Shown here: in pieces, positions 7,010 through 51,626 of the stretch
Layout of the letters: every line of letters starts with the position of its first letter
Numbering within the stretch: the stretch's first letter is position 1
Sequence record: PQ464595.1
Reading direction: 5' to 3' (one strand)
Length of the DNA stretch: 64,000 nucleotides
The notes under the pieces: generated by a model
Database searches by the model: none
Told to the model about the DNA's origin: nothing
What the model saw: only the letters and a program-made list of their open reading frames with translations
Translations under genes and position numbers: made by a program

Positions 7010-7026
7010 AATGTGTTACTAAGAAC

Positions 7027-7055
7027 ATTATACCACATTTTTTGATGCCGTTTCA
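7027..7055 (-). promoter_or_regulatory. TGAAACG-class promoter
   Basis: TGAAACG-N16-TATAAT, with TGG immediately before the -10; same spacing at 8 other sites. Confidence 0.75.
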
Positions 7056-7073
7056 TGTTCTTAGTGTGATTTT

Positions 7074-10168: not shown

Positions 10169-10229
10169 TAGAATCTATTTTCTGTTTTTTCGATAAAAGT
10201 GAATAGAGTGTGGTTGCTGTTAGATTCTA
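10169..10229 (-). ncRNA. CAGCAA module E1 (free hairpin)
   Basis: TAGAATCTA-ACAGCAA-(variable)-AAACAGAAAA-TAGATTCTA. Confidence 0.75.
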
Positions 10230-10235
10230 AAATTG

Positions 10236-10562
10236 TTATTTGGTCTTAAGTTCTGCTACTACAGCAGCAACTAAGTCCGGTGTAAAATCAATGCCGAAAA
10301 CTTCGGAATAATGTTTTACTGTACCTTCATAACCATGACGCTTGTCATTCAAGCGGTAACGCAATTCAAGAATCGCATTGTCAAAGTTAAACCAAGGATT
10401 GTTTTGACTCGCATGTAAGCGACCCCAATCAGTCAATGGTACGAAACCTTCATCAGCAGACTTACCCCGAAGAATATTATAGATAATATGCTCGTGTACA
10501 GTGTGCTCTTTCTCAAGTTTCCAGGTTGTTGTTACAGTAATGAATTGTTCTTTGGTCAACAT
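10236..10562 (-). CDS. hypothetical protein
   Basis: 108-aa ORF with SD. Confidence 0.7.
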   Translation of the reverse strand: MLTKEQFITVTTTWKLEKEHTVHEHIIYNILRGKSADEGFVPLTDWGRLHASQNNPWFNFDNAILELRYRLNDKRHGYEGTVKHYSEVFGIDFTPDLVAAVVAELKTK

Positions 10563-10682
10563 AGTATGTTCCTTTTGGATAGTAATTAATTTAGTGTTTT
10601 GTTCTGAATTAACTTTATCCGGTGGACCAGTACTGAATTTCTATAGCATCATAGGATTTACCTTTTTGTTTGTTTACTTAAT

Positions 10683-10758
10683 TAGAGCGAGTAATCGGAT
10701 TCGAACCGATGTGACCGACTTGGAAGGACAGCATATTAAGCCTCTATATGATACTCGC
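10683..10758 (-). tRNA. tRNA-Gly(TCC)
   Basis: Cloverleaf, loop CTTCCAA, U73; 3' CTA. Confidence 0.9.
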
Positions 10759-10761
10759 AGG

Positions 10762-10895
10762 TTGTACTGCCGCTCTCAGTACTGTACATACTTGTTCTTT
10801 ACGAACTGACCTGTACAGGTGCTACGCGGTTCCCGTCATATAATTTTACAAGCTGGGGGAATCATACAAGCTTGTTTCACACAGGAAGTGAATGA
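10762..10895 (-). ncRNA. candidate pseudoknotted RNA between tRNA-Gln and tRNA-Gly
   Basis: Hairpins TTCAC/GTGAA, ACAAGCT/AGCTTGT (loop TTCCC can pair with downstream GGGAA), TGTAC/GTACA, GTACTG/CAGTAC. Confidence 0.5.
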
Positions 10896-10906
10896 AATCT
10901 TTAAAT

Positions 10907-10982
10907 TAGCAGGCCCACAAGGACTCGAACCCTGAACGCGAGAATCAAAATCTCGTGTGTTAACCAATTACACCATGAGCCT
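10907..10982 (-). tRNA. tRNA-Gln(TTG)
   Basis: Cloverleaf, loop TTTTGAT, G73; 3' CTA. Confidence 0.92.
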
Positions 10983-10986
10983 AATC

Positions 10987-11030
10987 AAGAATCTATATAT
11001 TATTAACCGTGTTAATGCAGAAAGATTCTT
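10987..11030 (-). ncRNA. CAGCAA module E2 (minimal variant, CTGCAT)
   Basis: AAGAATCT-TTCTGCA-TTAAC ACG GTTAA-TAATATAT-AGATTCTT. Confidence 0.55.
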
Positions 11031-11079
11031 TGTTCTGTTCAGAATTTTTATTCATATCAAACCTGCCTGAACATCACTT

Positions 11080-11155
11080 TGCGGTCGTGCTTGGACTCGA
11101 ACCAAGATAAAAGAGTTAACAGCTCTCCGTAATTAAACCTTTATACGACACAACC
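11080..11155 (-). tRNA. tRNA-Asn(GTT)
   Basis: Cloverleaf, loop CTGTTAA, G73. Confidence 0.92.
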
Positions 11156-11174
11156 TTTTGTTTTTCTTACTTAT

Positions 11175-11203
11175 ATTATACCACATTATTTTGTGGCGTT
11201 TCA
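11175..11203 (-). promoter_or_regulatory. TGAAACG-class promoter
   Basis: TGAAACG-N16-TATAAT. Confidence 0.75.
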
Positions 11204-11212
11204 TCTTTTTTC

Positions 11213-11713
11213 TTAATTTTCTAAATTAAGTTCTTCATGAATTTCTCGATGACAGTTAGCACAGACTAACATACATTTATCTAATTCACTTTGAATCAGT
11301 TCCCATGAACGAGTAATACCTTCATCTGAAATACCAAAATCTTTTTGATTTGGGTCTTTATGATGGAAGTCTAACGCAGCTATTGATTTGTCATAACCAC
11401 ATCGTTCACATTTACCGCCAAGATATTCAACGGCTTTTATCTTTAATCGTTTACGATGTTCTGTAACTCCTTCAGAATTACATTTCATACATACACGCTT
11501 ACCGTCGGTTCTTTGTGAAAATTCAACATTGTGTTTTAAACATATTGAAGACTCACGTTGAATCATTATATGAGTTTTTAAACTCAAATCTTTGAAATAC
11601 TTCTTCATTGTAGTTGCTGATACATTACAAGTATTAGCAATCTGTTGAATAGTACTTCCACGTGAAATCATTTCCTGAACTACACGATTATCAATTTCAA
11701 GTTTTCTGCTCAT
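11213..11713 (-). CDS. HNH endonuclease (probable free-standing homing endonuclease) with N-terminal HTH
   Basis: CERCGY...LDFHH..P...C..VCANCHREIH motif. Confidence 0.9.
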   Translation of the reverse strand: MSRKLEIDNRVVQEMISRGSTIQQIANTCNVSATTMKKYFKDLSLKTHIMIQRESSICLKHNVEFSQRTDGKRVCMKCNSEGVTEHRKRLKIKAVEYLGGKCERCGYDKSIAALDFHHKDPNQKDFGISDEGITRSWELIQSELDKCMLVCANCHREIHEELNLEN

Positions 11714-11730
11714 AATTCACTTAAAAATAC

Positions 11731-11792
11731 TGGAATCCATTTTGATTTTTCAATTAACAGTTGATTTCATTTATGGTTGCTGCTGGATTCCA
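11731..11792 (-). ncRNA. CAGCAA module E3 (free hairpin)
   Basis: TGGAATCC-AGCAGCAACC...AAAAATCAAAAT-GGATTCCA. Confidence 0.75.
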
Positions 11793-11816
11793 AATCCGGT
11801 TTTGTTCAATTAAAGC

Positions 11817-11871
11817 TAGAATCTATTTTTGTTTTCTATATCCGAGAAGTTTTAATTGCTGGTAGATTCTA
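11817..11871 (-). ncRNA. CAGCAA module E4 (free hairpin)
   Basis: TAGAATCTA-CCAGCAA...AAAACAAAAA-TAGATTCTA. Confidence 0.75.
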
Positions 11872-11879
11872 AATGAGTA

Positions 11880-11987
11880 CAAATTGAGTTTACAGAAGTC
11901 CTTCCAAGGGACTAATACGTATTCTATTCTGACCTTAATAGGATAACATGCTATCCGTGTCACACCATAGTACGCCTGGTGAATTTG
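11880..11987 (-). ncRNA. candidate multi-way-junction RNA
   Basis: Closing CAAATT/AATTTG with hairpins CACCA/TGGTG, GGATA/TATCC, CTATT/AATAG, AGTCC/GGACT. Confidence 0.5.
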
Positions 11988-11995
11988 ATTAATAC

Positions 11996-12110
11996 TGGAA
12001 TTTATTTCGTTTTAGGCGGCTGCTCTCCCAACTGAGCTACAGTACTAGTACTGACAGGACTCGAACCTGCGACATGCTGCGTGATAGAAGTTAGTTGCTG
12101 TTAAATTCCA
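11996..12110 (-). ncRNA. CAGCAA module E5 carrying a circularly permuted tRNA domain
   Basis: Order: stem, ACAGCAA, anticodon 3' half, T arm (GCAGG TTCGAGT CCTGT), closed acceptor CAGTACT-AGTACTG, D arm (GCTC AGTTGGGA GAGC), stem. Confidence 0.8.
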
Positions 12111-12392
12111 AATTTTGTTTTAAAGATACGGATTATAGTTCGGATCACTAAAAATATTGTACTCTTTATGTTTACCATCCACAATAGTGTAGAAAGTAAA
12201 GTTCACAGAGTTATATGATTTACGGTCATTTTCTAAGTATATTGAAGTACTAGAACCGCCGATATTCACACGACTCACAACATAATAATGATCAGAATCT
12301 AACGCTAATGCGTTTATTCTATCACTTTCGTAACCAGCTTTAAGCTCAGTTACTTTAGCATATAAAATATCCATATCTTTCCTAATTAATAC

Positions 12393-12529
12393 AAGAATTC
12401 ATCGTTTATTGGATAGCCGTGTCTACCTATTTCACCATCACTATTCAGTACTGACATAGTTCGTAGGACTCGAACCTACACGCCATAAGGCCGCTATTTG
12501 GGTTAACATTTAGTTGCTGTTGAATTCTT
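12393..12529 (-). ncRNA. CAGCAA module E6 carrying a circularly permuted class-II (Leu-like) tRNA domain
   Basis: Variable arm, T arm GTAGG TTCGAGT CCTAC, acceptor closed by a TCAGTACTGA hairpin, D arm GTG AAATAGGTAGA CAC, GCTAT/ATAGC stem. Confidence 0.78.
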
Positions 12530-12541
12530 TAATTTACTACT

Positions 12542-12617
12542 TAGTGGGAATAGCTGGACTCGAACCAGCGGCGACTCGATTATCGGTCGAGCATTCTACC
12601 AACTGAATTATATTCCC
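12542..12617 (-). tRNA. tRNA-Ile(GAT)
   Basis: Cloverleaf; loop CCGATAA (C33 instead of U33); 3' CTA. Confidence 0.88.
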
Positions 12618-12870
12618 ATTTAATGCCTGTTACCAGGCATAATCACCAGTGCCGATGTAACATGCTTTGTTACAATGACCACTCATTGCGTCAAGTACAT
12701 CGTTCAGTTCTTCAAAGCGAGGATCTTTTTCATCCATTTCAAAGAACACATAAGTCAGTGCTTGGTACAAATCAATGTTATTTGGACGTTCGTTTGCGTC
12801 AACAAACTTACGAACCGCTTCGTGCATATTAGCACTATTCAGAATTTCATCTACGATGGTTTCCATAATA

Positions 12871-13329
12871 TCACCTAAAAGGATATGGTACAATGTTATG
12901 ATGTTCCCTAAGAAATTCTATGCTATGATTAACTTTCATCATATCTTCAAAGTACTTAACGAACTCGCGTAACCGTGTTACAAATTCGTAACTGAACGGA
13001 ACTTCTTTTAACGTACTTAACTGGAAGTGCCATTCCTCACTTATACTGTAAGGAAAACCATTGACTTTTAATATATCTTTATCGTCTTTATCCCAATAAT
13101 GTACGTTGAACCTGTTTGATAACAAGTCAACTACTATTGAAAGGGTGTTATCCTTTTCGTCCGACAAATAAAAATGAATTATCCCATCTCGTGAAGAATA
13201 ATGATCATTGTCATTAAAAACCACAGTATTAGATAATCCATCAATATTCGATCTACATCGTTCCGGTACATGTAATAACGAAAGGAAATATTCTTCTCCA
13301 ATTTCGTACAACACATTGTATTTGCTCAT
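12871..13329 (-). CDS. hypothetical protein, EEWxFQxST paralog family
   Basis: ISEEWHFQLSTL motif. Confidence 0.7.
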   Translation of the reverse strand: MSKYNVLYEIGEEYFLSLLHVPERCRSNIDGLSNTVVFNDNDHYSSRDGIIHFYLSDEKDNTLSIVVDLLSNRFNVHYWDKDDKDILKVNGFPYSISEEWHFQLSTLKEVPFSYEFVTRLREFVKYFEDMMKVNHSIEFLREHHNIVPYPFR

Positions 13330-13560
13330 TTAGAATGAATCCGGTTTTGCTACGCTCCGTACTGCCGACATGAAACCTTTTTGGAGGTCAGTCTTGGCAA
13401 TCGCCAGCCAACGTTTATCAATATCAGGATGATCTTCAAGTGCTTCGATCATATCTCCGACTTTAGCAGCTAAGTCCTTAATTGCGTTCATTGCATTAAT
13501 TTCTTGCTGATTAAGATCTCGATACCCTTTAATTTGTTTGTGTTGATTATCCATAATCAT
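13330..13560 (-). CDS. acb2: anti-CBASS cyclic-oligonucleotide sponge Acb2
   Basis: MDNQHKQIKGYRDL...RWLAIAKTDLQKGFM.AVR.VAKPDSF closely follows the Acb2 sequence as recalled. Confidence 0.92.
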   Translation of the reverse strand: MIMDNQHKQIKGYRDLNQQEINAMNAIKDLAAKVGDMIEALEDHPDIDKRWLAIAKTDLQKGFMSAVRSVAKPDSF

Positions 13561-13578
13561 TATCTCTCAATTAAATGC

Positions 13579-13636
13579 TGGAATCCACAAGGTCAAAGTA
13601 AAAGTTTGATTTTTGTGTGGTTGCTGGAGGATTCCA
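13579..13636 (-). ncRNA. CAGCAA module E7 (free hairpin)
   Basis: TGGAATCC-TCCAGCAACCACAC...GGATTCCA. Confidence 0.75.
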
Positions 13637-13878
13637 AATTCTTTATTCTACGTAGCCAATAAAGCCAACGTGTTCTTTAACAGTACTTTTCTTCTTAGTT
13701 TCTTCGTCATGAACTTCACGTTCAAAAACTACTGGTTCCAAAAGAACAACTGCTTTTTGTGCTCCGAAGATATTGCTAACTTGCTCGTCATTCAATTCTT
13801 CAGCACTAGTATGACGACGCAAAGCACCATCTACTTTGTAGTAGTAATCGTAAAACATTTTTTTCTTCCTTGTGTGAT

Positions 13879-13975
13879 TGGCGGTAAAGAGAGGATTTGA
13901 ACCTCCGAGGCTAGGGATTACCTAACCTGGCCGCTTTCCAGGCGACTGCATTAAGCCAAGCTCTGCCACTTTACC
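13879..13975 (-). tRNA. tRNA-Ser(GGA)
   Basis: Class II cloverleaf, loop CTGGAAA, G73, CCA. Confidence 0.95.
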
Positions 13976-14152
13976 TTTTAATATATTCCAAGTATTTATC
14001 ATTTAATACTTTATGTCTATAGCCACCCTTCTTTCTCAAGGACTTGATATAAAAGGTAGCTTTAGGATCTAATCCTTTGCTAATAAGATAATCTTTTTCA
14101 AATTCATCTTGTAGTTTAGACATGTATGACTCACTTGAGTAAATTAAAAAGC

Positions 14153-14212
14153 TAGAATCTATAATCTTTGTTTTCACCAATTGAATAAGAGTATGTTTGC
14201 TGTTAGATTCTA
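14153..14212 (-). ncRNA. CAGCAA module E8 (free hairpin)
   Basis: TAGAATCTA-ACAGCAA-ACATAC...AAAACAAAGATTA-TAGATTCTA. Confidence 0.75.
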
Positions 14213-14336
14213 TGCGAGAAAGGTTGGACTCGAACCAACGACCAGGCCATTAAAAGTGGATGAAGTATGGTTGCTGAGAAATTACATTACAGTAATTTTT
14301 GGGTTCTACCTGCTCTACCAACTGAGCTACTTTCTC
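14213..14336 (-). tRNA. tRNA-Lys(TTT) interrupted by a 49-nt CAGCAA insert (14260-14308) in the anticodon stem
   Basis: Deleting the insert gives the perfect arm GGCCA-CTTTTAA-TGGCC; acceptor, D and T arms are intact. Confidence 0.75.
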
Positions 14337-14831: not shown

Positions 14832-14937
14832 AAGAATCGTTGTTTTCTGTCCCCACAACCAGTGGTAAATCGGAATTGAACCGAAGGTGTTTTTCGCCAA
14901 ATGAAATATAAAGAGTTATGTTTGCTGGACGATTCTT
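14832..14937 (-). ncRNA. CAGCAA module E11 with T arm and closed acceptor-like hairpin
   Basis: AAGAATCGT-CCAGCAA...TCGG TTCAATT CCGA...CCAC/GTGG...AAAACA-ACGATTCTT. Confidence 0.7.
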
Positions 14938-14938
14938 T

Positions 14939-15012
14939 TAGCGTTCCCAACGGGGTTCGAACCCGTGTTGCCTGAGTGAAAGTCAGGTATCCTACCGCTA
15001 GATGATGGGAAC
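14939..15012 (-). tRNA. tRNA-Glu(TTC)
   Basis: Cloverleaf, loop CTTTCAC, G73; 3' CTA. Confidence 0.95.
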
Positions 15013-15195
15013 AATTTTTATTCAGATTCTTTCAATGACCATTCTGTACTTTTATCGGTACTTTTGGTTACTTCAAAACCTAATTCGGACATTACTTCAG
15101 GAAGGTTATTGTTATCAATACCACTAAGGATATGACGAACGATTACCATGTTTTCTTCAGATGATGCCATTTTACTATCCTTTGTTGAAGGAACT

Positions 15196-15311
15196 GAAAT
15201 CTTTGTTTTTCTGGCCCCAAGCACAGCCTACATAGCAACGTGGCTGCTGCGGATTCGAACCGCACCGTTTTTTTCGCATAAAAAATATTGTTTTGTTTGC
15301 TGTAAGATTTC
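15196..15311 (-). ncRNA. CAGCAA module E12 with T arm, closed acceptor and mini D arm
   Basis: GAAATCTT-ACAGCAA...TGCGG TTCGAAT CCGCA-GCAGCC/GGCTGT-GC TTGGG GC-AAAAACA-AAGATTTC. Confidence 0.72.
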
Positions 15312-15328
15312 GTGTTGCTAATACTTTT

Positions 15329-15357
15329 ATTATACCACAAATATTTGATTCGTTTCA
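15329..15357 (-). promoter_or_regulatory. TGAAACG-class promoter
   Basis: TGAAACG-N16-TATAAT, directly upstream of E12. Confidence 0.75.
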
Positions 15358-15378
15358 AATATTTCTTAATTAAATTCA

Positions 15379-15500
15379 GGAATCTCGTTTTATCCAGCAC
15401 CAAGCTCCCACTATTTGAATAAGGCAGATGTTCGTGGGTGGGGAATTGAACCCCGTCGTTTTGTTTTCATCAAAAGGTTTAATTTTTGCTGTAAGATTCC
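15379..15500 (-). ncRNA. CAGCAA module E13 with T arm, closed acceptor and mini D arm
   Basis: GGAATCT-TACAGCAA...GGGG TTCAATT CCCC-CCCAC/GTGGG-AGC TTGGT GCT-AAAACG-AGATTCC. Confidence 0.72.
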
Positions 15501-15517
15501 GCTGCCTTATGTACTAC

Positions 15518-15546
15518 ATTATACCAGATTTTTTTGAGTCGTTTCA
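15518..15546 (-). promoter_or_regulatory. TGAAACG-class promoter
   Basis: TGAAACG-N16-TATAAT, directly upstream of E13. Confidence 0.75.
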
Positions 15547-15572
15547 AATTTTTCTGTATAATTTTCAGAAAC

Positions 15573-18006: not shown

Positions 18007-20544
18007 TTACCACTCTACGCCTACACCAGCACCCCACAGTACTTCAGACTGAGTGTTAGTACTGACAGATACCTTAGTGGTGACACTTTCGCTTACACGA
18101 GCACTGAAGCCCACAGCTACTGCTTGTTCACCATCATAACCACCAATACCCGCACCTACAGATACGTTGCCGTTCTGAGTTACCTGTGGGATGTTTGCCA
18201 TCGCACCAGCACCAGCGATACCAGCACTTGCTACCTTACGATTATCACCAATACGTTTATCAATGTCTGAGAAACGGCGGTTCGTTTGGTTTTCGAAGTT
18301 AGATACACGCTTTTCAACAGAACCAATACGGTTAGTATTGCTGGTGATACGTTCATCGTGTTGTACTAACGTAGCATCGTTAGAATCGATCCGGCTGGAC
18401 AACTTAGCATCAGCAGATTTGCGTGACGCAGTTTCACTTGCCAGTTCTTTCTTACTCGCCTTAGTTGCGATAACCTTATCCTGATTGGAATCAGTTACAG
18501 CCTGGTCAGATTTGTTTTTGTCGATATTAGCTTTCAGGGCATTATCCGCATTGGCACGAGTACTAGACTCAGTATCAATGTTCGCCTGAAGGTTTTTATC
18601 GGCGTTCTGACGTGCCACGGTTTCACTTGCCAGTTCTTTCTTACTTGCCTTAGTTGCGATAACCTTATCCTGATCGGAATCGGTTACTGCTTGGTCGGCT
18701 TTGTTCTTGGCGATGTTTGCTTTCAGGGCAGTGTCACCAGCGATACGGTTATCAGTTTCAGCACTGAGAGCCTTATCTTGTGTAGCATCAGTTACAGCTT
18801 GATCCGCTTTGTTCTGATCAATATTGTTCTTCAACGCAGTATCGGCGGTAGCACGAGTTTGGGCTTCAGAATCAATATTGGATTGAAGTACTTTGTCAGC
18901 ATCTTTACGGGCTGCTACTTCTTTATTCAGATCAGCTTTGTCAGCTTTAGTTACAGCAAGACCAACAATCGCAGCATCCTGAACGGCATCGTGAACAGCT
19001 TGCTTAGCTTTATCAACAGCGTAGGTAGATTTATCTACTTTACTGTCAATTGCGGCATTTTGCTTCGCGTCGGTTTTTGCTTGGTCAGATTTGTTTTTGT
19101 CGATATTAGCCTGTAACTGTTTATCAGCATCAGAACGAGTCTTTGCTTCATCACTCAATGCTTTGTCTTGCTTAGCATCAGTTTTGGCTTGAGCCGCTTT
19201 GTTCTGATCGATATTGTTCTTCAACGCAGTATCAGCTTTTTGACGATCAGTTACTTCTTTACCAATCGCAGCGTTTTGTGCGTTATCAGTACTGGCCTGG
19301 TCTGATACTGCTTTATTGATCTTGTCATCCAGTGCTTTATCACCTTTGACACGATCCGCAGTTTCTTTGTTCAGATCGGACTTATCAGCTTTTGATACTT
19401 CAAGGCCAATAATCGCACCATCTTGTAATGCGTCATGGATACCTTGAACTGCCTTATCAACAGCATAGGTAGACTTGTCTACTTTACCATTGATCGCCTT
19501 ATCTTGTTTGGAATCAGTTACAGCTTGTCCCGCTTTGTTCTGATCAATATTGTTCTTCAACGCAGTATCGGCATTCTGACGATCAGTTACTTCTTTATCC
19601 AATGCTGATTGGTCAGCTTTACCAGCGATAGCGGTATCTTGCTCAGCGTTTTTGGCTTCTACACCATCTAAACGTTCAGCATTGTTAATACTGCGAGAAT
19701 CAGTTACTTCCAACTGTTTGTTGGTTTCACGAATAGCACCTTCAGTTGAATCGGCACGATGTTCCAGATCAGTAGCACGGTTATTGGCAGTTTGGGCTGC
19801 GTCTTGTACCGCATTGATATGTTCATCTTGACCTGAATCACGAGTGGCCTGGGTATCTTTGTCAACTTTGGTATTCAGGCTGGCATCAGTTTCAGCTTTA
19901 TTAGCATCAACTTTATTGTCAACATCAGTGATCTTCTTGCCATTATCAAGTACTTGTGGGATTAACCCATAAACAGTACTTAACGCATTGTTGGCAGTCG
20001 CACGACCTTCAACCGCAATATCAAACGCATGATCAGTTTTCACTGAAACATCATTTAACGCAGTTTTATCAGCTTTAGAGTCAATAGCTGTATCCTGGGC
20101 AGAGTCACGTGCGGCCTGAGTATCTTTGTTGACCAGGTTAGAGGTATCGGCATCTTTACCATCTGCCCCATCTTTACCCGGATCACCTTTATCGCCTTTG
20201 TCACCTTTATCACCCTTATCACCTTTGGTTGGTGAAGTATTGCCACCACCAGTACTGATAGAGTTATTAAAGTCGTCCAAGGACGAAGGAACATTACCAG
20301 TTTTTAACGAATCTAGCAAAGCTTTTGCTTCTTCTGCTGTACCATTGAAACGGTTGTTGAACGTGGAAATGAAACGTGCGTCGTTCCAATTTCCGTTTTC
20401 TTTGGCGTTCATCAAGTCCTGAACAGCCGGACCCCATTGATCGCCAGATGATTTCAACGATACGGCGGCGTTAGCCATATTAACCGTCATCACAGAAACC
20501 ATTAAGGCTACTGCCAGCATAATCTTTTTCATTTTGTCACCCAA
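18007..20544 (-). CDS. YadA-like trimeric autotransporter adhesin (signal peptide, collagen-like GXY repeats, repetitive coiled-coil stalk, C-terminal anchor)
   Basis: GDKGDKGDKGDKGDPGKDGADGKD; tandem stalk repeats; C-terminal GIAGAGAMA..PQ..GAGIGGY.GEQAVAVG...GAGVGVEW beta-barrel anchor. Confidence 0.9.
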   Translation of the reverse strand: MGDKMKKIMLAVALMVSVMTVNMANAAVSLKSSGDQWGPAVQDLMNAKENGNWNDARFISTFNNRFNGTAEEAKALLDSLKTGNVPSSLDDFNNSISTGGGNTSPTKGDKGDKGDKGDKGDPGKDGADGKDADTSNLVNKDTQAARDSAQDTAIDSKADKTALNDVSVKTDHAFDIAVEGRATANNALSTVYGLIPQVLDNGKKITDVDNKVDANKAETDASLNTKVDKDTQATRDSGQDEHINAVQDAAQTANNRATDLEHRADSTEGAIRETNKQLEVTDSRSINNAERLDGVEAKNAEQDTAIAGKADQSALDKEVTDRQNADTALKNNIDQNKAGQAVTDSKQDKAINGKVDKSTYAVDKAVQGIHDALQDGAIIGLEVSKADKSDLNKETADRVKGDKALDDKINKAVSDQASTDNAQNAAIGKEVTDRQKADTALKNNIDQNKAAQAKTDAKQDKALSDEAKTRSDADKQLQANIDKNKSDQAKTDAKQNAAIDSKVDKSTYAVDKAKQAVHDAVQDAAIVGLAVTKADKADLNKEVAARKDADKVLQSNIDSEAQTRATADTALKNNIDQNKADQAVTDATQDKALSAETDNRIAGDTALKANIAKNKADQAVTDSDQDKVIATKASKKELASETVARQNADKNLQANIDTESSTRANADNALKANIDKNKSDQAVTDSNQDKVIATKASKKELASETASRKSADAKLSSRIDSNDATLVQHDERITSNTNRIGSVEKRVSNFENQTNRRFSDIDKRIGDNRKVASAGIAGAGAMANIPQVTQNGNVSVGAGIGGYDGEQAVAVGFSARVSESVTTKVSVSTNTQSEVLWGAGVGVEW

Positions 20545-22285: not shown

Positions 22286-22404
22286 TGCGGTGAGTACAGG
22301 AATCGAACCTGTGACTTCGGCGTGAAAGGCAATTGTTTGATTGCTGTTAGATTCAGTACTGGAATCCATTTTTTTACGCTATTTTACCACTAAACTAACT
22401 CACC
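22286..22404 (-). tRNA. tRNA-Glu(TTC) interrupted by a 46-nt CAGCAA insert (22331-22376) at 29/30
   Basis: Deleting the insert gives GCGGC-CTTTCAC-GCCGA; acceptor GGTGAGT/ACTCACC, G73. Confidence 0.75.
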
Positions 22405-23627: not shown

Positions 23628-23707
23628 TAGTGCGAGGGGATGGACTTGAACCACCGACACGGAGTTACCCTAAGATAATCTTGCTCTACCATCTGAGCTA
23701 CCCTCGC
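23628..23707 (-). tRNA. tRNA-like gene with aberrant anticodon arm (anticodon not assignable)
   Basis: Perfect acceptor GCGAGGG/CCCTCGC, D and T arms; anticodon/variable region about 5 nt too long with irregular pairing (AGATTATCTTAGGGTAACTCCG). Confidence 0.6.
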
Positions 23708-24244: not shown

Positions 24245-24359
24245 TGTGGAGAGGGGTGGATTCGAACCACCGTACCGTTCTTATGAATGAAATTTATGGA
24301 TGCCGTAAGATTCCATCTGGAATCGCTTTTCGTGTCCTGGGCCGCTAGACGACCTCTCC
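24245..24359 (-). tRNA. tRNA-CAT-like gene interrupted by a 39-nt CAGCAA-family insert (24292-24330; core CGGCAT)
   Basis: Deleting the insert gives CGTTC-ATTCATAA-GAACG (8-nt loop); the insert has a GATTCC AGAT GGAATC stem. Confidence 0.6.
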
Positions 24360-24994
24360 AGTTTTAATTAGTCACTAATAGTGACTGTCATTGGTTTAAA
24401 TTCTGTATAACCATGTGATTTTAAAATCTTCACCATTTCATTATACAGTTTTTCTTCTTCATTGCTTGGATATGCTGGACGGTTAATACCTTCCAGTTCC
24501 ATACGTACAGAAGTGGGATCAGTTGAATTCTCATTACCCGCAAATAGGGTATCATAAGTCGTCCAATCCCCGTAACGCTCAATACAAATGAGTTTCACAC
24601 ATAGTCCTTAGTCATGTCATAGACCGCAGAGTTAATATCGGCGAACTTCACTTTCCACGGTGCGTAGTACTGCTGAAGAATTTGATCCTTCTTGAACAGT
24701 GATTCTAACGCAGTAATAGCGAATTTCGCATCTTCAAGAAACTTATCTTTAACTTTCTTGATGTACTCAGGTTTCATACCATCGAAGCCCATCTTATAGG
24801 CAACTTCTAATTCACGGTATGAAGCACCGAGATCACCCAATGGGTTTTTAACGTTCTCAGGGAAACAGAAGCGATAGACTTCTTCGCATGTTTCCTTGAG
24901 GCGTTCTTCCGCTTTCGCTTCTTTGCCGTACTTCTCGAAGAAGATTTCAGCAGGTGGATAAGTCTTTACATTCTTCATCCACGTTACGATTAAC

Positions 24995-28255: not shown

Positions 28256-29043
28256 AGTCCTGTGTGGTTCACCGAGAAGATACGAAGGAACGCATCAATC
28301 CAAACAATTGCGAAAGGTATAAACATACCAGTCGCAGACCAAAACTTTTTCACATTCCAGGATATTGCTGCTTTAATCGAATTACTCAGATGGTAAACCG
28401 AAAACAGTAATGCCCAAAGACATATCAATGCCAGAACTGGACTCATTTTTCGAGATCCTTAATGTTTTCAGTACTTGAAGTTTCCACACCGTCTAAGCGA
28501 TGATAGAATTCACCAAATACCTTACCGATAAGAAAAGTACTGATCATAATTATCGTCAGACCAATACTACCGATAGAACCACCAATAATCGCACCGTACA
28601 TCAAACTCGCAATGAAACCGATTATAACAGAGATGACCATTTGAATCAAGAAAGAAAGCTTCATGGTACGATTTCCCAATCATTTACTTCAGTTTCGCGA
28701 CGAGTCAGTTCAACAATCCAAACTTTACCATTCTGACAGTGATATGACATACCAGCTTTATTGATATAGATTTCAATATCTAATTCAACGAATGATGGAC
28801 GACGAATATAAAATCCGTTCTTAAATGAAGTTCTTAGTACTTTCTGAATTTCCGCTATAGTCATAGGTGTCTCACTTGTGGATGCGATATGTTTCATCGA
28901 TCATCTGCTGTGTAACAATACGACCGATACCTTCAGCGACTGCGTTAATCACAATCGCACTTACGATTACAAGAAGTAATCCGAACAAGATAAAACAAGC
29001 ATTGTCTTTTAAGTACTTAATCATATCTCGTTCCTCAATTAAA

Positions 29044-29380
29044 GCCGCATAGGGGATTCGAACCCCTTCAGATTATACGCGGAACCACCCCGCTCAGGTA
29101 TATCTACCCGTAATCCTATCACAATACCATTATTGATACTAGTACTTTCTTGTGCACCTTCCAGTACTTTCTCTCAGTGATTGATAAGGAGTCGAACCCT
29201 ACCACGGCATATTCTCAATTAATATATGGTTGGGGGTCGTGACCTTCTCAGAGTTACCTCTCCAGCCCCATCCCATTCTTGCCACGTCAAGATATGAGTA
29301 CTCTCATATTAGAGCTTATTTTACCACGATTAACTGGCTACATTCGAGGATAGCAATTCCCCTAGCTACTAATCAAGTAG
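29044..29380 (-). ncRNA. candidate large structured RNA(s) ending in tRNA T arms
   Basis: T arms TAGGG TTCGACT CCTTA and AGGGG TTCGAAT CCCCT; hairpins ATATGAG/CTCATAT, TCTTG/CAAGA, AGAG GTAA CTCT, GGTA/TACC, GCGG/CCGC; no ORF. Confidence 0.55.
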
Positions 29381-30607: not shown

Positions 30608-30718
30608 GGTGCTAAGAACAGGATTCGAACCTGTAAGGAAACCTCGCGGTACTTCCCACGTCCTATTGTCGCTTTCGCTATCGTCAGACGCTACGTTTAC
30701 CAATTCCGTCATCTCAGC
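30608..30718 (-). ncRNA. class-II tRNA scaffold with a 24-nt expanded anticodon loop
   Basis: GCTGAGA/TCTTAGC, Leu-like D arm, GCGTC/GACGT stem, loop contains GC-GAAA-GC, long variable hairpin, T arm. Confidence 0.7.
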
Positions 30719-30881: not shown

Positions 30882-30956
30882 TGTGGCTCATACCAGATTC
30901 GAACTGGTGTGGACAGAGATTTAGAGTCTCCCGCTACGCCTCTCAGCTAATGAGCC
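30882..30956 (-). tRNA. amber suppressor tRNA (anticodon CTA)
   Basis: Cloverleaf GGCTCAT/ATGAGCC, arm GGAGA-CTCTAAA-TCTCT, A73. Confidence 0.9.
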
Positions 30957-30977
30957 ATTGATTCATTTGATACGTTT

Positions 30978-31006
30978 ATTATACCAGAGTTTTTTAAGTC
31001 GTTCCA
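30978..31006 (-). promoter_or_regulatory. TGAAACG-class promoter (TGGAACG variant) driving the suppressor tRNA
   Basis: TGGAACG-N16-TATAAT. Confidence 0.7.
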
Positions 31007-31461
31007 TCTTTTTCTCAAAAAATTTCACGACTTCAATCACTTAGGCGTCGCAATCGTCGTAAGTAAGAAAACGATTACGAAGTACGCAGAACAGATGTGT
31101 CCACACGTCACCGTCTTCGAGTTCAGCCGAACAGATGAATACACCTTCTTCTGTATCGCTTTTCCAAATACCTTCAGACATATAAGGTTTCTGAAACCAT
31201 GCCTGAACAGTACCATACATGTTTATGGATACTATTGGCATTCCAGAAGGAATATCCAATACACATCCGTTAACATTGACCTGTACTTTATTTGTGTTTC
31301 GACGAAGTTTCAAAATTACTTCCTCAAGAAGTTCACAAATACGACATTGCTATCTTTATTAATCATAGCCATAAGTCGTGCCTTTTGTTCATCACTCATT
31401 GGTGTGACATGACCACGTGTAGGTAAATCTTTCATTTCGTACCTCTCGTTGGTAGGAGTAC

Positions 31462-39224: not shown

Positions 39225-39243
39225 GTTCTGTTTATTTATCTAT

Positions 39244-39272
39244 ATTATAGCACAAAAAAGCGTTCCGTTTCA
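39244..39272 (-). promoter_or_regulatory. TGAAACG-class promoter
   Basis: TGAAACG-N16-TATAAT. Confidence 0.75.
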
Positions 39273-39275
39273 TCT

Positions 39276-39644
39276 TTATGCTAAAATATTTAAAATATTT
39301 TTCACCATCTGAATATGATCAAAGCTTATCAGTGGATCAATAGTACTTAACTGGAAATGCCATTCTTCTGAAATATCCAAATTATGAGTGACGATAATAC
39401 CGCCAATCATGTACTCTATGTTTTTATTTATGAAATCAACATCCAGTACTGGTTTATCATCTACCAGAAAACGATGTAAATCTTTATTTTTATTTGATGC
39501 TACCGTATGAATATAGGTAAACTCAGTTCCTTGATGGAAGTATGAATAAAGAGGGGTTTTCATCATCCCCTCTTTAACAGAGTCTGAGCATTCTAATACA
39601 CGTTCAATAACACTTTCAACTTCAAGTATATCCACTACCAGCAC
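39276..39644 (-). CDS. hypothetical protein, EEWxFQxST paralog family
   Basis: ISEEWHFQLSTI motif. Confidence 0.7.
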   Translation of the reverse strand: MLVVDILEVESVIERVLECSDSVKEGMMKTPLYSYFHQGTEFTYIHTVASNKNKDLHRFLVDDKPVLDVDFINKNIEYMIGGIIVTHNLDISEEWHFQLSTIDPLISFDHIQMVKNILNILA

Positions 39645-42873: not shown

Positions 42874-43141
42874 TTAGCGTGAAAATAATCCAAGTACTCT
42901 CGTGGTATTTCAAAACCACCATCAACGAGCGTACCATGACGTTCAGAAGTTAGTTCAAGTACTAAAAATTCATCACCAACTTTGATACCATCACGTAACG
43001 CCCAGCCATATACTTCAAGAAATTCTGGATCAACTAATTTCAGTTTATCATATCCAGGTCGTAAATCAGACCATGTATAACACCATGTGAAGTTATTTGA
43101 TTCATTAACAGAATTAGAACTCATGTAGTACTCCAGAAATG

Positions 43142-43165
43142 AAAAAACCAGCAGGAAGCTGGTTT
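43142..43165 (-). terminator. intrinsic terminator
   Basis: AAACCAGC/GCTGGTTT hairpin plus U tract. Confidence 0.7.
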
Positions 43166-43172
43166 AGTTAAT

Positions 43173-43294
43173 TAGTCGGGAATTGTGGACTCGAACCACA
43201 TCTCACGGCTCCCTATGCAATTGTATTGGTTGCTGTGAAATTCCATTACAAGAATTTATGTTATACGGTGTGCTAACCCTTACACTAATTCCCG
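43173..43294 (-). tRNA. tRNA-Pro(AGG)-like gene interrupted by a 47-nt CAGCAA insert (43219-43265) at 29/30
   Basis: Deleting the insert gives CCGGC-ATAGGGA-GCCGT; C1-G72, A73 and G37 fit Pro identity. Confidence 0.7.
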
Positions 43295-43491
43295 ATAAGT
43301 ACCTTTCGGTACTATTTATTGTCATTCTGTTTCTTGGCTGACGAGCCTCAGAAATAATTCGAGGACAGCGTTTGCTGTGTCTGAGCTTTAATAACAGCGG
43401 ATTATAGTCTAGCTGTGACGACTCATGATAAAAATAAAACAAATGAAAAAAATCTGGAAAGATTTATTCACCTACAACACGCCTACAGGGA

Positions 43492-44813: not shown

Positions 44814-44854
44814 ATTTGATTCTCCACAATTCGTTCAATTTCTTTCATGTCTAC

Positions 44855-44883
44855 ATTATACCACAAAATTTTGAACCGTTTCA
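44855..44883 (-). promoter_or_regulatory. TGAAACG-class promoter
   Basis: TGAAACG-N16-TATAAT. Confidence 0.75.
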
Positions 44884-45490
44884 AAATTCTTCACTTAATA
44901 GTGGACATTTTTCAACATCCACATTTGAACTTATTCTACCGCAGGACGAGCTTTTTCAACTTCGTCAAAGAATTCGTTATTCATTGCGATTAAGTCAGCG
45001 TACCAGAAAATACCAGTTTCACCAGGAGTGATAGGTAAATCATTTACAGCAGCGAACAATAGTTCAGCTTTAGTAATATCACAACGAGTCCAAGTACCAT
45101 TAGTAAAACCAGTTAGGATAGTAAACTCTCCACGGCAATCTTCAGCAAGTTTCTCAGTCAAATATACAGTATTAACCATGTCATCCTGATAGGATCGAAG
45201 CATGATATTAGTACTGTTAATGTAAGACATGAGATTGAAGTTCGCTTCAGTTGTTACTAAGAAACGTTCAAATCCTTCAGACTTATCTAGTTTGAAATCT
45301 AGAGTAAATCCAAGTTTTTGGACTACTTTCTCCATGAGATATAGTTCATAACCATGATAAATGGTTGGATCGCCATCACGAGCAAATACACGGATAGCTA
45401 AGTAATCGTCTTCAATTACAGTTTCGAAATTATCGTTATCAGCTAAAAACGCTTCAATGCGTTTGATAACATCTTGTACTTCTTGTAACA

Positions 45491-50791: not shown

Positions 50792-50880
50792 TGCGGAAGG
50801 TGTGGGATTCGAACCCACAAGCCGATTCTCACCGACCGAAGGATTAGCAATCCTCTCCAATACCGTTATGGGAACCTTCC
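50792..50880 (-). tRNA. tRNA-Ser(GCT)
   Basis: Class II cloverleaf, loop TTGCTAA, G73. Confidence 0.95.
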
Positions 50881-50889
50881 AATACTTAC

Positions 50890-50918
50890 ATTATAGCACA
50901 ACTTTTTTTATCGTTTCA
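50890..50918 (-). promoter_or_regulatory. TGAAACG-class promoter
   Basis: TGAAACG-N16-TATAAT. Confidence 0.75.
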
Positions 50919-51626
50919 TCTTTTTTCAAGATTTTTAACAATTCGTTGTGCAAGTTATAGAGAACAAACACATTCTCACGAGTGAGACGGTATTTCTCCA
51001 GGTGTTCGTCAGTAATATCATCCATAGATGGAAATAGTACTAAACAGTCTTCATCACTTAGGCGAGTATTATCGAAGAATTGAACAAACCCTTCTGGATC
51101 ATTGTCAGTGAAGATAACATTGGTAAGCTCATAACCATGAAGGTCAAAGAACTGAACATGATAGTTATACTGATTGATAGACACAGATGCTACCAAATCT
51201 TCACCTAACCGCATAGTACTGTTAAAGCACATATATGGTTCATGAACAACAGATGGATATTCATAAAATTCGTCAAATGTACGCTTAGCGTCATTAGCAT
51301 CGAATGCTACCAGTTGATTGTACTTGTTCATTGTAGACTCCGATAATGACTTAAGATTGCGTTAACATCATCTTTGGTAATACCAAAGACTTCATCTTTA
51401 TCACCTTCAAGGAAGACATGATAATCAATGGATGCGATGGTTTCACGATTAAAAGGAATACCATGATGTGGATTAACTAAGTTCATATTGAACTGTACTT
51501 TATCCAGCTTCATGTATGTAGGGGTCACTTTTACTTCATAATCTGTAGTACTAATGACCAGTACGTTATTAATACCGTCATAGCGTTCATAACGGTCAGT
51601 GCCTAATAGGGATTCAAAGGTTGAAC

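Follow-up and report, generated by a model that had tools for sequence, protein, structure and literature searches.

YrlA RNAs (RF02553; Chen et al., 2014, PMC4201824) mimic tRNAs in permuted order: the 5' and 3' ends come together as the Ro60-binding stem, and a loop caps the acceptor. In M. smegmatis, cleavage of YrlA by RNase P and subsequent addition of CCA open the acceptor post-transcriptionally, leaving a Ro-bound mimic in two RNA pieces with a CCA-tailed acceptor end (PMC4201824). Bacterial rsr and Y RNA genes are also linked to the repair genes rtcB/rtcA (PMC4201824, PMC7790460). Phage Y RNAs and phage Ro60 proteins are themselves already known: the Ro60 of Thermus phage phiLo was shown experimentally to bind the adjacent Y-like RNAs Yrl1 and Yrl2, which present a stem-bulge-stem with CGAA, and it also complexes with the PNPase of its host (Hu et al., 2025, PMC12135203; structures 9KOP and 9L5Y). 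In the non-canonical tRNA introns and permuted tRNA genes of archaea and algae (PMC4090602), inserts occur in the anticodon stem near position 29/30 and the same element flanks the permuted genes.

The window analysed here is a stretch of 64,000 nt, bases 62001-126000 of the Erwinia phage Kaldavass record PQ464595.1 (366.6 kb). Kaldavass is a GAP32/CBB-like jumbo phage and the window spans its tRNA region, with 26 tRNAs found by ARAGORN and 27 by Rfam, every one on the minus strand. The region also holds a tRNA-Pro-shaped gene, here called the embedded Pro gene, in which 47 nt are inserted between positions 29 and 30. Our leading proposal, which we regard as evenly poised between right and wrong, is that this gene derives from tRNA-Pro and encodes a Y-RNA-like tRNA mimic in un-permuted form, in which the insert, a Y-RNA-type module, is retained as a handle for a Ro60-like protein.

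With YrlA, the locus shares a tRNA-like domain (T arm, D arm and acceptor-like stem) and an encoded Ro60-like protein, supplied in this case by the phage itself; the stem of its module may correspond to the Ro60-binding stem with its (C/R)GAA motif. The chain break lies elsewhere, however: the acceptor of the embedded Pro gene is open and its module is loop-closed. It differs from YrlA further in retaining a complete anticodon-loop hairpin, in its distance of about 173 kb from the Ro-like gene, and in module boxes (CAGCAAYYA and AAAAC) that depart from the Rfam YrlA consensus. The open, CCA-tailed state of M. smegmatis YrlA would be reached directly, the Pro gene itself being un-permuted. The phiLo Ro60 structure is among the top Foldseek matches of our model of the Kaldavass-type DUF2828 protein, although the Kaldavass protein is DUF2828/DUF7788 rather than Pfam TROVE, and the two phiLo RNAs adjoin the Ro60 gene, with neither described as tRNA-embedded. 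The resemblance to the archaeal and algal genes extends to the position of the insert and to the use of one element both there and around permuted genes; unlike them, the embedded Pro gene has no bulge-helix-bulge (BHB), the annotation of the related phage CBB is without EndA or RtcB, the host is bacterial and the flanking element is a Y-RNA module.

The embedded Pro gene and its insert

The original prediction placed the gene at 43173-43294; the gene itself occupies 43176-43294 on the minus strand, and the three additional bases belong to the trailer. Default ARAGORN makes no call here and Rfam gives no tRNA match, even at E<=10, while ARAGORN in intron mode reports a tRNA-Pro(agg) at c[43175,43294] with a 48-nt intron. 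Once the flanks are joined in silico, ARAGORN calls a 73-nt tRNA-Pro(agg), which bears out the earlier proposal that excision of 47 nt reveals a tRNA-Pro(AGG), and the best matches of the joined flanks outside the phage group are annotated mycobacteriophage tRNA-Pro genes (75% identity, all 72 nt). The 5' part reads CGGGAAT TA GTGT AAGGGTTA GCAC A CCG and the 3' part GC ATAGGGA GCCGT GAGA TGTGG TTCGAGT CCACA ATTCCCG A, with the anticodon AGG at 43212-43214 within the loop AUAGGGA, a 4-nt variable loop (GAGA) and no encoded CCA. The acceptor stem has seven perfect base pairs, and together with the D arm and a T arm with a GTTCGA-type loop it makes up the cloverleaf of the tRNA family (RF00005); the continuous 5-bp anticodon stem and 7-nt loop of that family appear only after in-silico joining, and the joined stem then has a C27.U43 mismatch in Kaldavass where relatives have A-U. 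The loop AU-AGG-GA and the determinants C1-G72, A73 and G37 that had been read from the sequence are all present on the minus strand, and the acceptor identity does agree with the hidden anticodon.

Orthologues of the embedded Pro gene are present in all 19 of 19 related GenBank records, with the insert in each. Since eight orthologues keep the gene with compensatory changes in the T stem (U-A to A-U, and G-C to A-U or G.U), comparison of these sequences indicates that it is not a chance match; the acceptor stem also has compensatory changes among related records. The trailer, CUAAUUAACU / CUAAUUAA, precedes the terminator and is common to canonical phage tRNAs. We found no promoter-like site near the locus. 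The two other tRNA-Pro genes found by the tools in the window both have the anticodon UGG. In GenBank, the locus is annotated variously as tRNA-Val(AAC), tRNA-Leu(TAA), tRNA-Pseudo, a CDS or nothing. The CDS XGIBIPCR_CDS0262 ('hypothetical protein', window 43203-43442, minus strand) overlaps the 5' part and the insert, and is probably a spurious call because CBB has no such ORF.

The insert reads TATAACAT-AAATTCT-TGTAAT-GGAATTT-CA-CAGCAACCA-ATACAATT as DNA and contains a 7-bp hairpin (AAAUUCU/GGAAUUU), flanked by UAUAAC on its 5' side and by CAGCAACCA on its 3' side (Table 1). Among eight orthologues it is almost invariant: the hairpin loop alone varies, in length and sequence, and the rest of the insert is better conserved than the tRNA arms. 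The hairpin is AU-rich and is not recovered by single-sequence MFE folding, and the case for it is therefore comparative. We rejected a group I intron or small self-cleaving ribozyme, as Rfam gives no group I, small-ribozyme or other intron signal at E<=10; at 47 nt, the insert is too short for the catalytic core of a group I intron (P3-P9, at least 200 nt). A BHB intron was likewise rejected, as inspection of the junctions CCG/UAU and AUU/GCA allowed no 4-bp helix with 3-nt bulges to be drawn. Neither target-site duplications nor transposon terminal repeats were found at the insert, and no insert-free allele was found in IMG/VR.

Four of the 14 module copies in the window sit inside tRNA anticodon stems. 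The Glu gene of this group shares with the embedded Pro gene the insert ends TA...CAATT and the position 29/30, just as had been noticed earlier. Rfam detects both the embedded Glu and the embedded Lys gene as long tRNAs. The Glu-like sister gene has a variant module, GAUUCC-AGAU-GGAAUC UUA CGGCAUCCA, and its joined flanks give an 8-nt loop, while those of its CBB orthologue give Glu(UUC). Over the eight embedded genes of Kaldavass and CBB, removal of the module in silico yields canonical 7-nt loops that fit the tRNA bodies in six and loops of 8 or 10 nt in the remaining two. In the embedded genes, a variable stretch of 14 to 17 nt separates the CAGCAA box from the 3' junction. Each of the two phages holds one embedded Lys(UUU), one Glu(UUC) and one Pro(AGG), at loci that differ between them, and one embedded locus is Glu(UUC) with G73 in one phage and Lys(UUU) with A73 in the other. 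We rejected gene conversion from the canonical Lys, Glu and Pro genes of the phage as the source of the hidden anticodons, as the identity is only 55-68%.

Table 1. Coordinates of the embedded genes, module units and neighbouring features (window positions unless the record is named).
Feature	Position	Strand	Remarks
5' part of embedded Pro gene	43266-43294	-	29 nt: acceptor 5' strand, U8 A9, D arm, A26, positions 27-29 (CCG)
Insert of embedded Pro gene, Y-RNA-type module	43219-43265	-	47 nt; motif match 43227-43244
Insert segment UAUAACAU	43258-43265	-	
Insert stem strand AAAUUCU	43251-43257	-	
Insert hairpin loop UGUAAU	43245-43250	-	
Insert stem strand GGAAUUU	43238-43244	-	
Insert CA and CAGCAACCA box	43227-43237	-	
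Insert segment AUACAAUU	43219-43226	-	
3' part of embedded Pro gene	43176-43218	-	43 nt: positions 30-31 (GC), anticodon loop, T arm, acceptor 3' strand, A73
Intrinsic terminator	43141-43165	-	43165-43145 plus T tract; 11 nt past A73 of the Pro gene
Embedded Glu gene	22288-22404	-	Module at 29/30; joined flanks tRNA-Glu(UUC), G73
Embedded Lys gene	14215-14336	-	Module at 28/29; joined flanks tRNA-Lys(UUU)
Glu-like sister gene	24245-24360	-	tRNA-Glu-like D arm, variant module
Unit A, YrlA-like Y RNA	11998-12112	-	Permuted tRNA-like body
Unit B, permuted tRNA-like	12393-12531	-	Long variable arm, GAAUUC closing stems, CAGCAACUA box
Three short T-arm units (in 14832-15503)	15378-15503, 15195-15314, 14832-14939	-	T arm and closed hairpin inside module
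Five A-rich units (in 10169-14214)	14153-14214, 13578-13638, 11817-11873, 11731-11794, 10169-10231	-	
Promoter repeats	7015-7064, 11163-11212, 15317-15366, 15506-15555, 30966-31015, 39232-39281, 44843-44892, 50878-50927	-	
Kaldavass DUF2828 gene	record 278662-280176		82% identical to CBB_183

A family of Y-RNA-type modules

A relaxed search finds 14 co-oriented module units in the window, and the pattern RGAATYYNNCAGCAAHYA (RGAAUYY-NN-CAGCAAHYA) has eight matches, all on the minus strand, against none expected. In CBB, 12 units lie on the coding strand and none on the opposite strand. In the consensus, a CAGCAAYYA box comes after the 3' strand of a 7-9-bp stem whose core is RGAAU, and a (U/G)AAAAC-type box comes before the 5' strand. 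Ten of the 14 units are inverted, with a stem strand and CAGCAA followed by a payload, the (U/G)AAAAC box and the complementary stem strand, and the module therefore closes the whole unit. Their payloads are of three kinds: permuted tRNA-like bodies, a T arm with a hairpin, and an A-rich stretch. Unit A runs in the order UGGAAUUUA, A, CAGCAACUA, T arm, closed acceptor hairpin, D arm, UAAAAC and UAAAUUCCA. The three short T-arm units, among which sits a tRNA-Glu (14941-15012), have compensatory changes relative to the CBB copies. The five A-rich units have only a 27-34-nt A-rich segment within the module, and tRNAs and ORFs are interspersed with them.

The closing helix is supported by covariation: over 22 distinct stems from five genomes, all seven pairs have changed on both sides, with 66 compensatory cells against 17.8 +/- 4.8 in shuffles, and 99.4% of positions are paired, a figure inflated by the choice of the stem set by complementarity. 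As the stems include G.U pairs and the units are biased to one strand, the module appears to act at the RNA level and not as single-stranded DNA. A MITE or an IS200/IS605-type ssDNA element was rejected, there being no target duplications or paired end hairpins, and so was a promoter, since neither spacing nor sequence fits sigma-70, sigma-54 (GG/GC spacing), a T4 MotA box or a late promoter, and the actual early promoters belong to another family of repeats. We also rejected the idea that unit A is two adjacent interrupted tRNA genes, as an ORF ends just upstream and the acceptor strands are complementary at 7 of 7 positions. In the CBB orthologue of unit A (L006 32579-32730), about 30 nt are inserted in the acceptor hairpin and acceptor pairing is lost; the inner stem of unit A is a perfect GCAGC/GCUGC in CBB and has a C.A mismatch in Kaldavass. 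The palindrome CAGTACT(G) recurs on the minus strand in the module hairpin loop of the embedded Glu gene (22356-22362) and in the acceptor hairpins of units A and B (12040-12053 and 12445-12455).

The link to Y RNAs comes from unit A, which matches Rfam YrlA (RF02553) at 12019-12077 with 41.9 bits (E 6e-7, or 2e-8 in local search), below the YrlA gathering score of 69 bits; the match covers the tRNA-like core, model positions 24-84. The embedded Pro gene has no Rfam YrlA match. It has the tRNA-like domain with T and D arms that characterizes YrlA, and the permuted topology, with the 5' and 3' ends forming the Ro-binding stem, is present in units A and B and absent from the Pro gene, where the module is an internal hairpin. 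We looked in the module for the GNCGAA/CGAA motif of the YrlA Ro60 site: the RGAAU core aligns with GCGAAUUAAACAG of a TROVE-linked RNA of Rhizobium phage RHph_Y65, and CGAA itself occurs in some copies only (e.g. at 15302).

BLAST with unit A identified homologues in unrelated phages, on the same strand as Ro60-like genes and just upstream of them: in RHph_Y65 the distance to the TROVE gene is 0.85 kb, and in Enterococcus phage vB_EfaM_A2 about 0.25 kb separates the homologue from a DUF2828 gene. The YrlA matches at these sites score 34-45 bits. The Enterococcus RNA has this same module, as AAGAAUCUA-A-CAGCGAU ... ACG-UAUAAAA-UAGAUUCUU, with a second, short unit after it, and it shares the three-way junction with mini hairpin, UUGC-CUAUGGA-GCCGU there and UUGC-AUAGGGA-GCCGU in the embedded Pro gene. 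Circularly permuted in silico, the Pro gene scores 89 against this RNA, compared with 35 +/- 5.4 for shuffles. On a 131-kb IMG/VR contig, three short units in tandem, with a promoter ahead of them, lie immediately upstream of the DUF2828 gene; covariation is seen between the stems (AGGAAUC, AGAGAGC, AGGAAGC), and the UAACAGCAAUUA and AAAAAC boxes are constant. On a second IMG/VR contig, one short and one YrlA-like unit are located 2.5 kb away from a gene of DUF2828-like type. In a scan of IMG/VR with a 17-nt motif, in which most single matches arise by chance, a DUF2828 gene was nearby at 2 of 119 loci, both of them genuine units. The module cannot be an intron in the permuted units because it forms the RNA ends there. 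Of the exon-intron design originally proposed, the hidden tRNA-Pro(AGG) is real, while the insert, judged by these sequence comparisons, is a copy of a conserved phage Y-RNA module and not an anonymous intron.

The Ro60-like protein and its neighbourhood

The CBB counterpart of the Kaldavass DUF2828 protein, CBB_183 (504 aa), is present in virions; the published CBB table assigns it to DUF2828 and gives Rsr of D. radiodurans as an HHpred match. Its Pfam domains are DUF2828 and DUF7788, and its VWA match is weak. By tblastn, the DUF2828 family extends over 710 phage records, where mycobacteriophage copies are annotated 'Ro-like RNA binding protein'. Searches of the PDB with the DUF2828 protein, by sequence and by profile, gave no Ro60 match, and the relation appeared by fold only. 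We modelled the orthologue from a metagenomic contig whose embedded Pro gene is identical to that of the window (AlphaFold, AF2; pLDDT 82, pTM 0.81). The top four Foldseek matches, all full-length, were the phiLo TROVE domain, Xenopus Ro60, D. radiodurans Rsr and the phiLo Ro60 dimer (9kop, 2i91_A, 2nvo and 9l5y_A; E 7e-8 to 1.5e-6). The Kaldavass DUF2828 protein is, on this model, predicted to have a Ro60-like fold.

In both CBB and Kaldavass, an RNA ligase is encoded one or two small ORFs upstream of the DUF2828 gene; in Kaldavass the order at record 278662-282089 is RNA ligase, two small ORFs, DUF2828 gene. ATP-dependent RNA ligases are present, and this one, with PF09414 and an OB domain, belongs to the NgrRnl/DraRnl type. 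Ligases of that type seal nicks in duplex RNA. EndA and RtcB domains (PF01974 and PF01139) are absent from the published Pfam/HHpred table of CBB. The pairing of a phage Ro60-like gene with an RNA ligase recalls the rsr-rtcB linkage in bacteria. A gene resembling a ribosome hibernation factor (S30EA) lies 3 kb downstream of the DUF2828 gene.

Known Y RNAs lie within 4 kb of their Ro60 gene. The YrlA-type arrangement, within about 4 kb of a Ro60 orthologue and on the same strand, is found in Enterococcus A2, in RHph_Y65 and on the IMG/VR contig L070, and does not hold in Kaldavass: no Y-like unit lies beside the DUF2828 gene, all units in this phage group sit in the tRNA region, and the embedded Pro gene is at about record 105200. 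The separation from the Ro-like gene counts against the reading of the embedded genes as Y-RNA mimics.

Possible roles of the embedded genes

The Y-RNA-like mimic is nevertheless the simplest reading, because the module forms the ends of the permuted units and the Enterococcus Y RNA keeps a junction of the type seen in the embedded Pro gene. The acceptor end of the RNA would be matured as that of a tRNA, through RNase P cleavage, trimming of the 3' end and addition of CCA, while the module would be kept and would be bound by the Ro60-like protein. The RNA could then serve as the tether or gate of a phage Ro RNP, displaying a tRNA-Pro-like body and an anticodon-loop hairpin, and would not be spliced into a decoding tRNA. 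The embedded Pro, Glu and Lys genes would in this case all represent the YrlA-like architecture with the chain break moved. Against a mimic count the 37% share of CCU among Pro codons in the window ORFs, alongside the two UGG genes as the only other tRNA-Pro genes found there, and the lack of a YrlA match at the Pro gene. So do the coordinated identity features of the embedded genes, namely C1-G72, A73 and G37 for Pro, the Lys- and Glu-type D arms, and the locus that is Glu(UUC) with G73 in one phage and Lys(UUU) with A73 in the other: an RNA selected to be aminoacylated and to decode would be expected to show them.

Such features would fit a protein-dependent tRNA intron, an alternative that we consider somewhat unlikely. 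The module would be recognised, perhaps by the Ro60-like protein together with a nuclease, and excised; the exon ends would abut as a nick in the anticodon-stem duplex, and the phage ligase would seal it to give a tRNA-Pro(AGG/IGG) for CCU, a codon that makes up 37% of Pro codons in the window ORFs. In keeping with splicing, the joined flanks are canonical tRNAs with body-consistent identity, the insert is invariably at 28/29 or 29/30, discriminator and anticodon switch together at the Glu/Lys locus, the trailer and terminator of the Pro gene are similar to those of canonical tRNAs, and the ligase adjoining the Ro60-like gene is of the type suited to the duplex nick that an insert in a stem would leave. 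However, the same module provides the RNA termini of YrlA-like units, and the identical 3-bp stem and mini-hairpin junction stays unspliced in the Enterococcus Y RNA. Splicing is further disfavoured by the missing BHB motif and group I or ribozyme match, by the CBB annotation without EndA or RtcB, by the variable distance from box to 3' junction, by the two embedded genes with 8- or 10-nt loops and by the failure to find an insert-free allele in IMG/VR; moreover, the Lys and Glu products would duplicate uninterrupted phage tRNAs. A wider version, unlikely in our estimate, makes the module a cut-and-join handle by which the Ro60-like RNP and the ligase would excise it from four pre-tRNAs and also process the permuted units. 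If true, a bacterial virus would have its own analogue of archaeal BHB splicing, and a rare A34 tRNA-Pro would result.

Within the Y-RNA reading, the RNP may instead use the anticodon loops as decoys or sensors, showing Lys(UUU), Glu(UUC) and Pro-type hairpins to host tRNA-targeting factors, so as to divert, for example, anticodon nucleases or to guide repair by the adjacent ligase. We think this quite improbable: the argument is purely inferential, the anticodon hairpin has only 2-3 bp, and Pro tRNA is, to our knowledge, not a known target of anticodon nucleases. It would fit with the upkeep of embedded Lys(UUU), Glu(UUC) and Pro(AGG) loops in each of two phages, with the RNA ligase next to the Ro60-like gene, and with the rtcB/rtcA linkage of bacterial rsr-Y RNA genes (PMC4201824, PMC7790460). 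The embedded genes might, finally, be disabled tRNA genes with functionless products, created when a mobile or recombining module landed in spare copies, and the redundancy of the Lys and Glu copies, the non-canonical loops of two embedded genes, the C.U pair 27-43 in Kaldavass and the inconsistent GenBank annotation could all be understood in this way. Such decay is very improbable, however, for a gene retained in 19 of 19 related records, with T and acceptor stems that have undergone compensatory changes and an insert that is nearly invariant and shows neither target-site duplication nor transposon terminal repeats, in a family whose every copy is co-oriented with transcription.

We found no description, in the literature searched, of putative Ro-binding modules embedded in otherwise intact tRNA genes, of a 14-unit family across a jumbo-phage tRNA region, or of permuted or interrupted tRNAs in these phages. 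One phage lineage holds a series of ordinary tRNAs, module-embedded tRNAs in which the anticodon loops are still plausible and the acceptor end is open, fully permuted mimics of YrlA type, and minimal units, which suggests a route from tRNA to Y RNA. These offer natural constructs with which to ask if CCA tailing, charging or splicing can occur on a tRNA mimic bound by Ro. They also tie the widespread phage DUF2828 'RNA-binding protein' to a definable RNA motif, a link that would aid the annotation of loci now called tRNA-Val, tRNA-Leu, pseudo-tRNA or hypothetical proteins.

Several other features of the tRNA region were recorded, all on the minus strand unless stated. They include an amber-suppressor-type tRNA with anticodon CUA (ARAGORN 'Pyl', 30883-30956), a tRNA with an 8-nt anticodon loop and the 4-base anticodon uuag (23630-23707), and a 111-nt tRNA-like gene with a different extra segment (30608-30718), which ARAGORN -i reads as Arg(acg) with a 17-nt intron and whose CBB orthologue is annotated as a 110-nt tRNA-Val(GAC). 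Directly downstream of tRNA-Tyr, an Rfam tRNA match of 43 bits at 2425-2505 is without an ARAGORN call, and two T-arm-like motifs at 29020-29200 are called by no tool. A family of promoter repeats, TGAAACG-N15-TGTGGTATAAT, has the form of sigma-70-like early promoters with an extended -10, and several lie directly upstream of tRNA genes. At 18400-20200, tandem repeats on the coding strand, with periods of 108 nt and multiples, suggest that a repetitive protein is encoded there.
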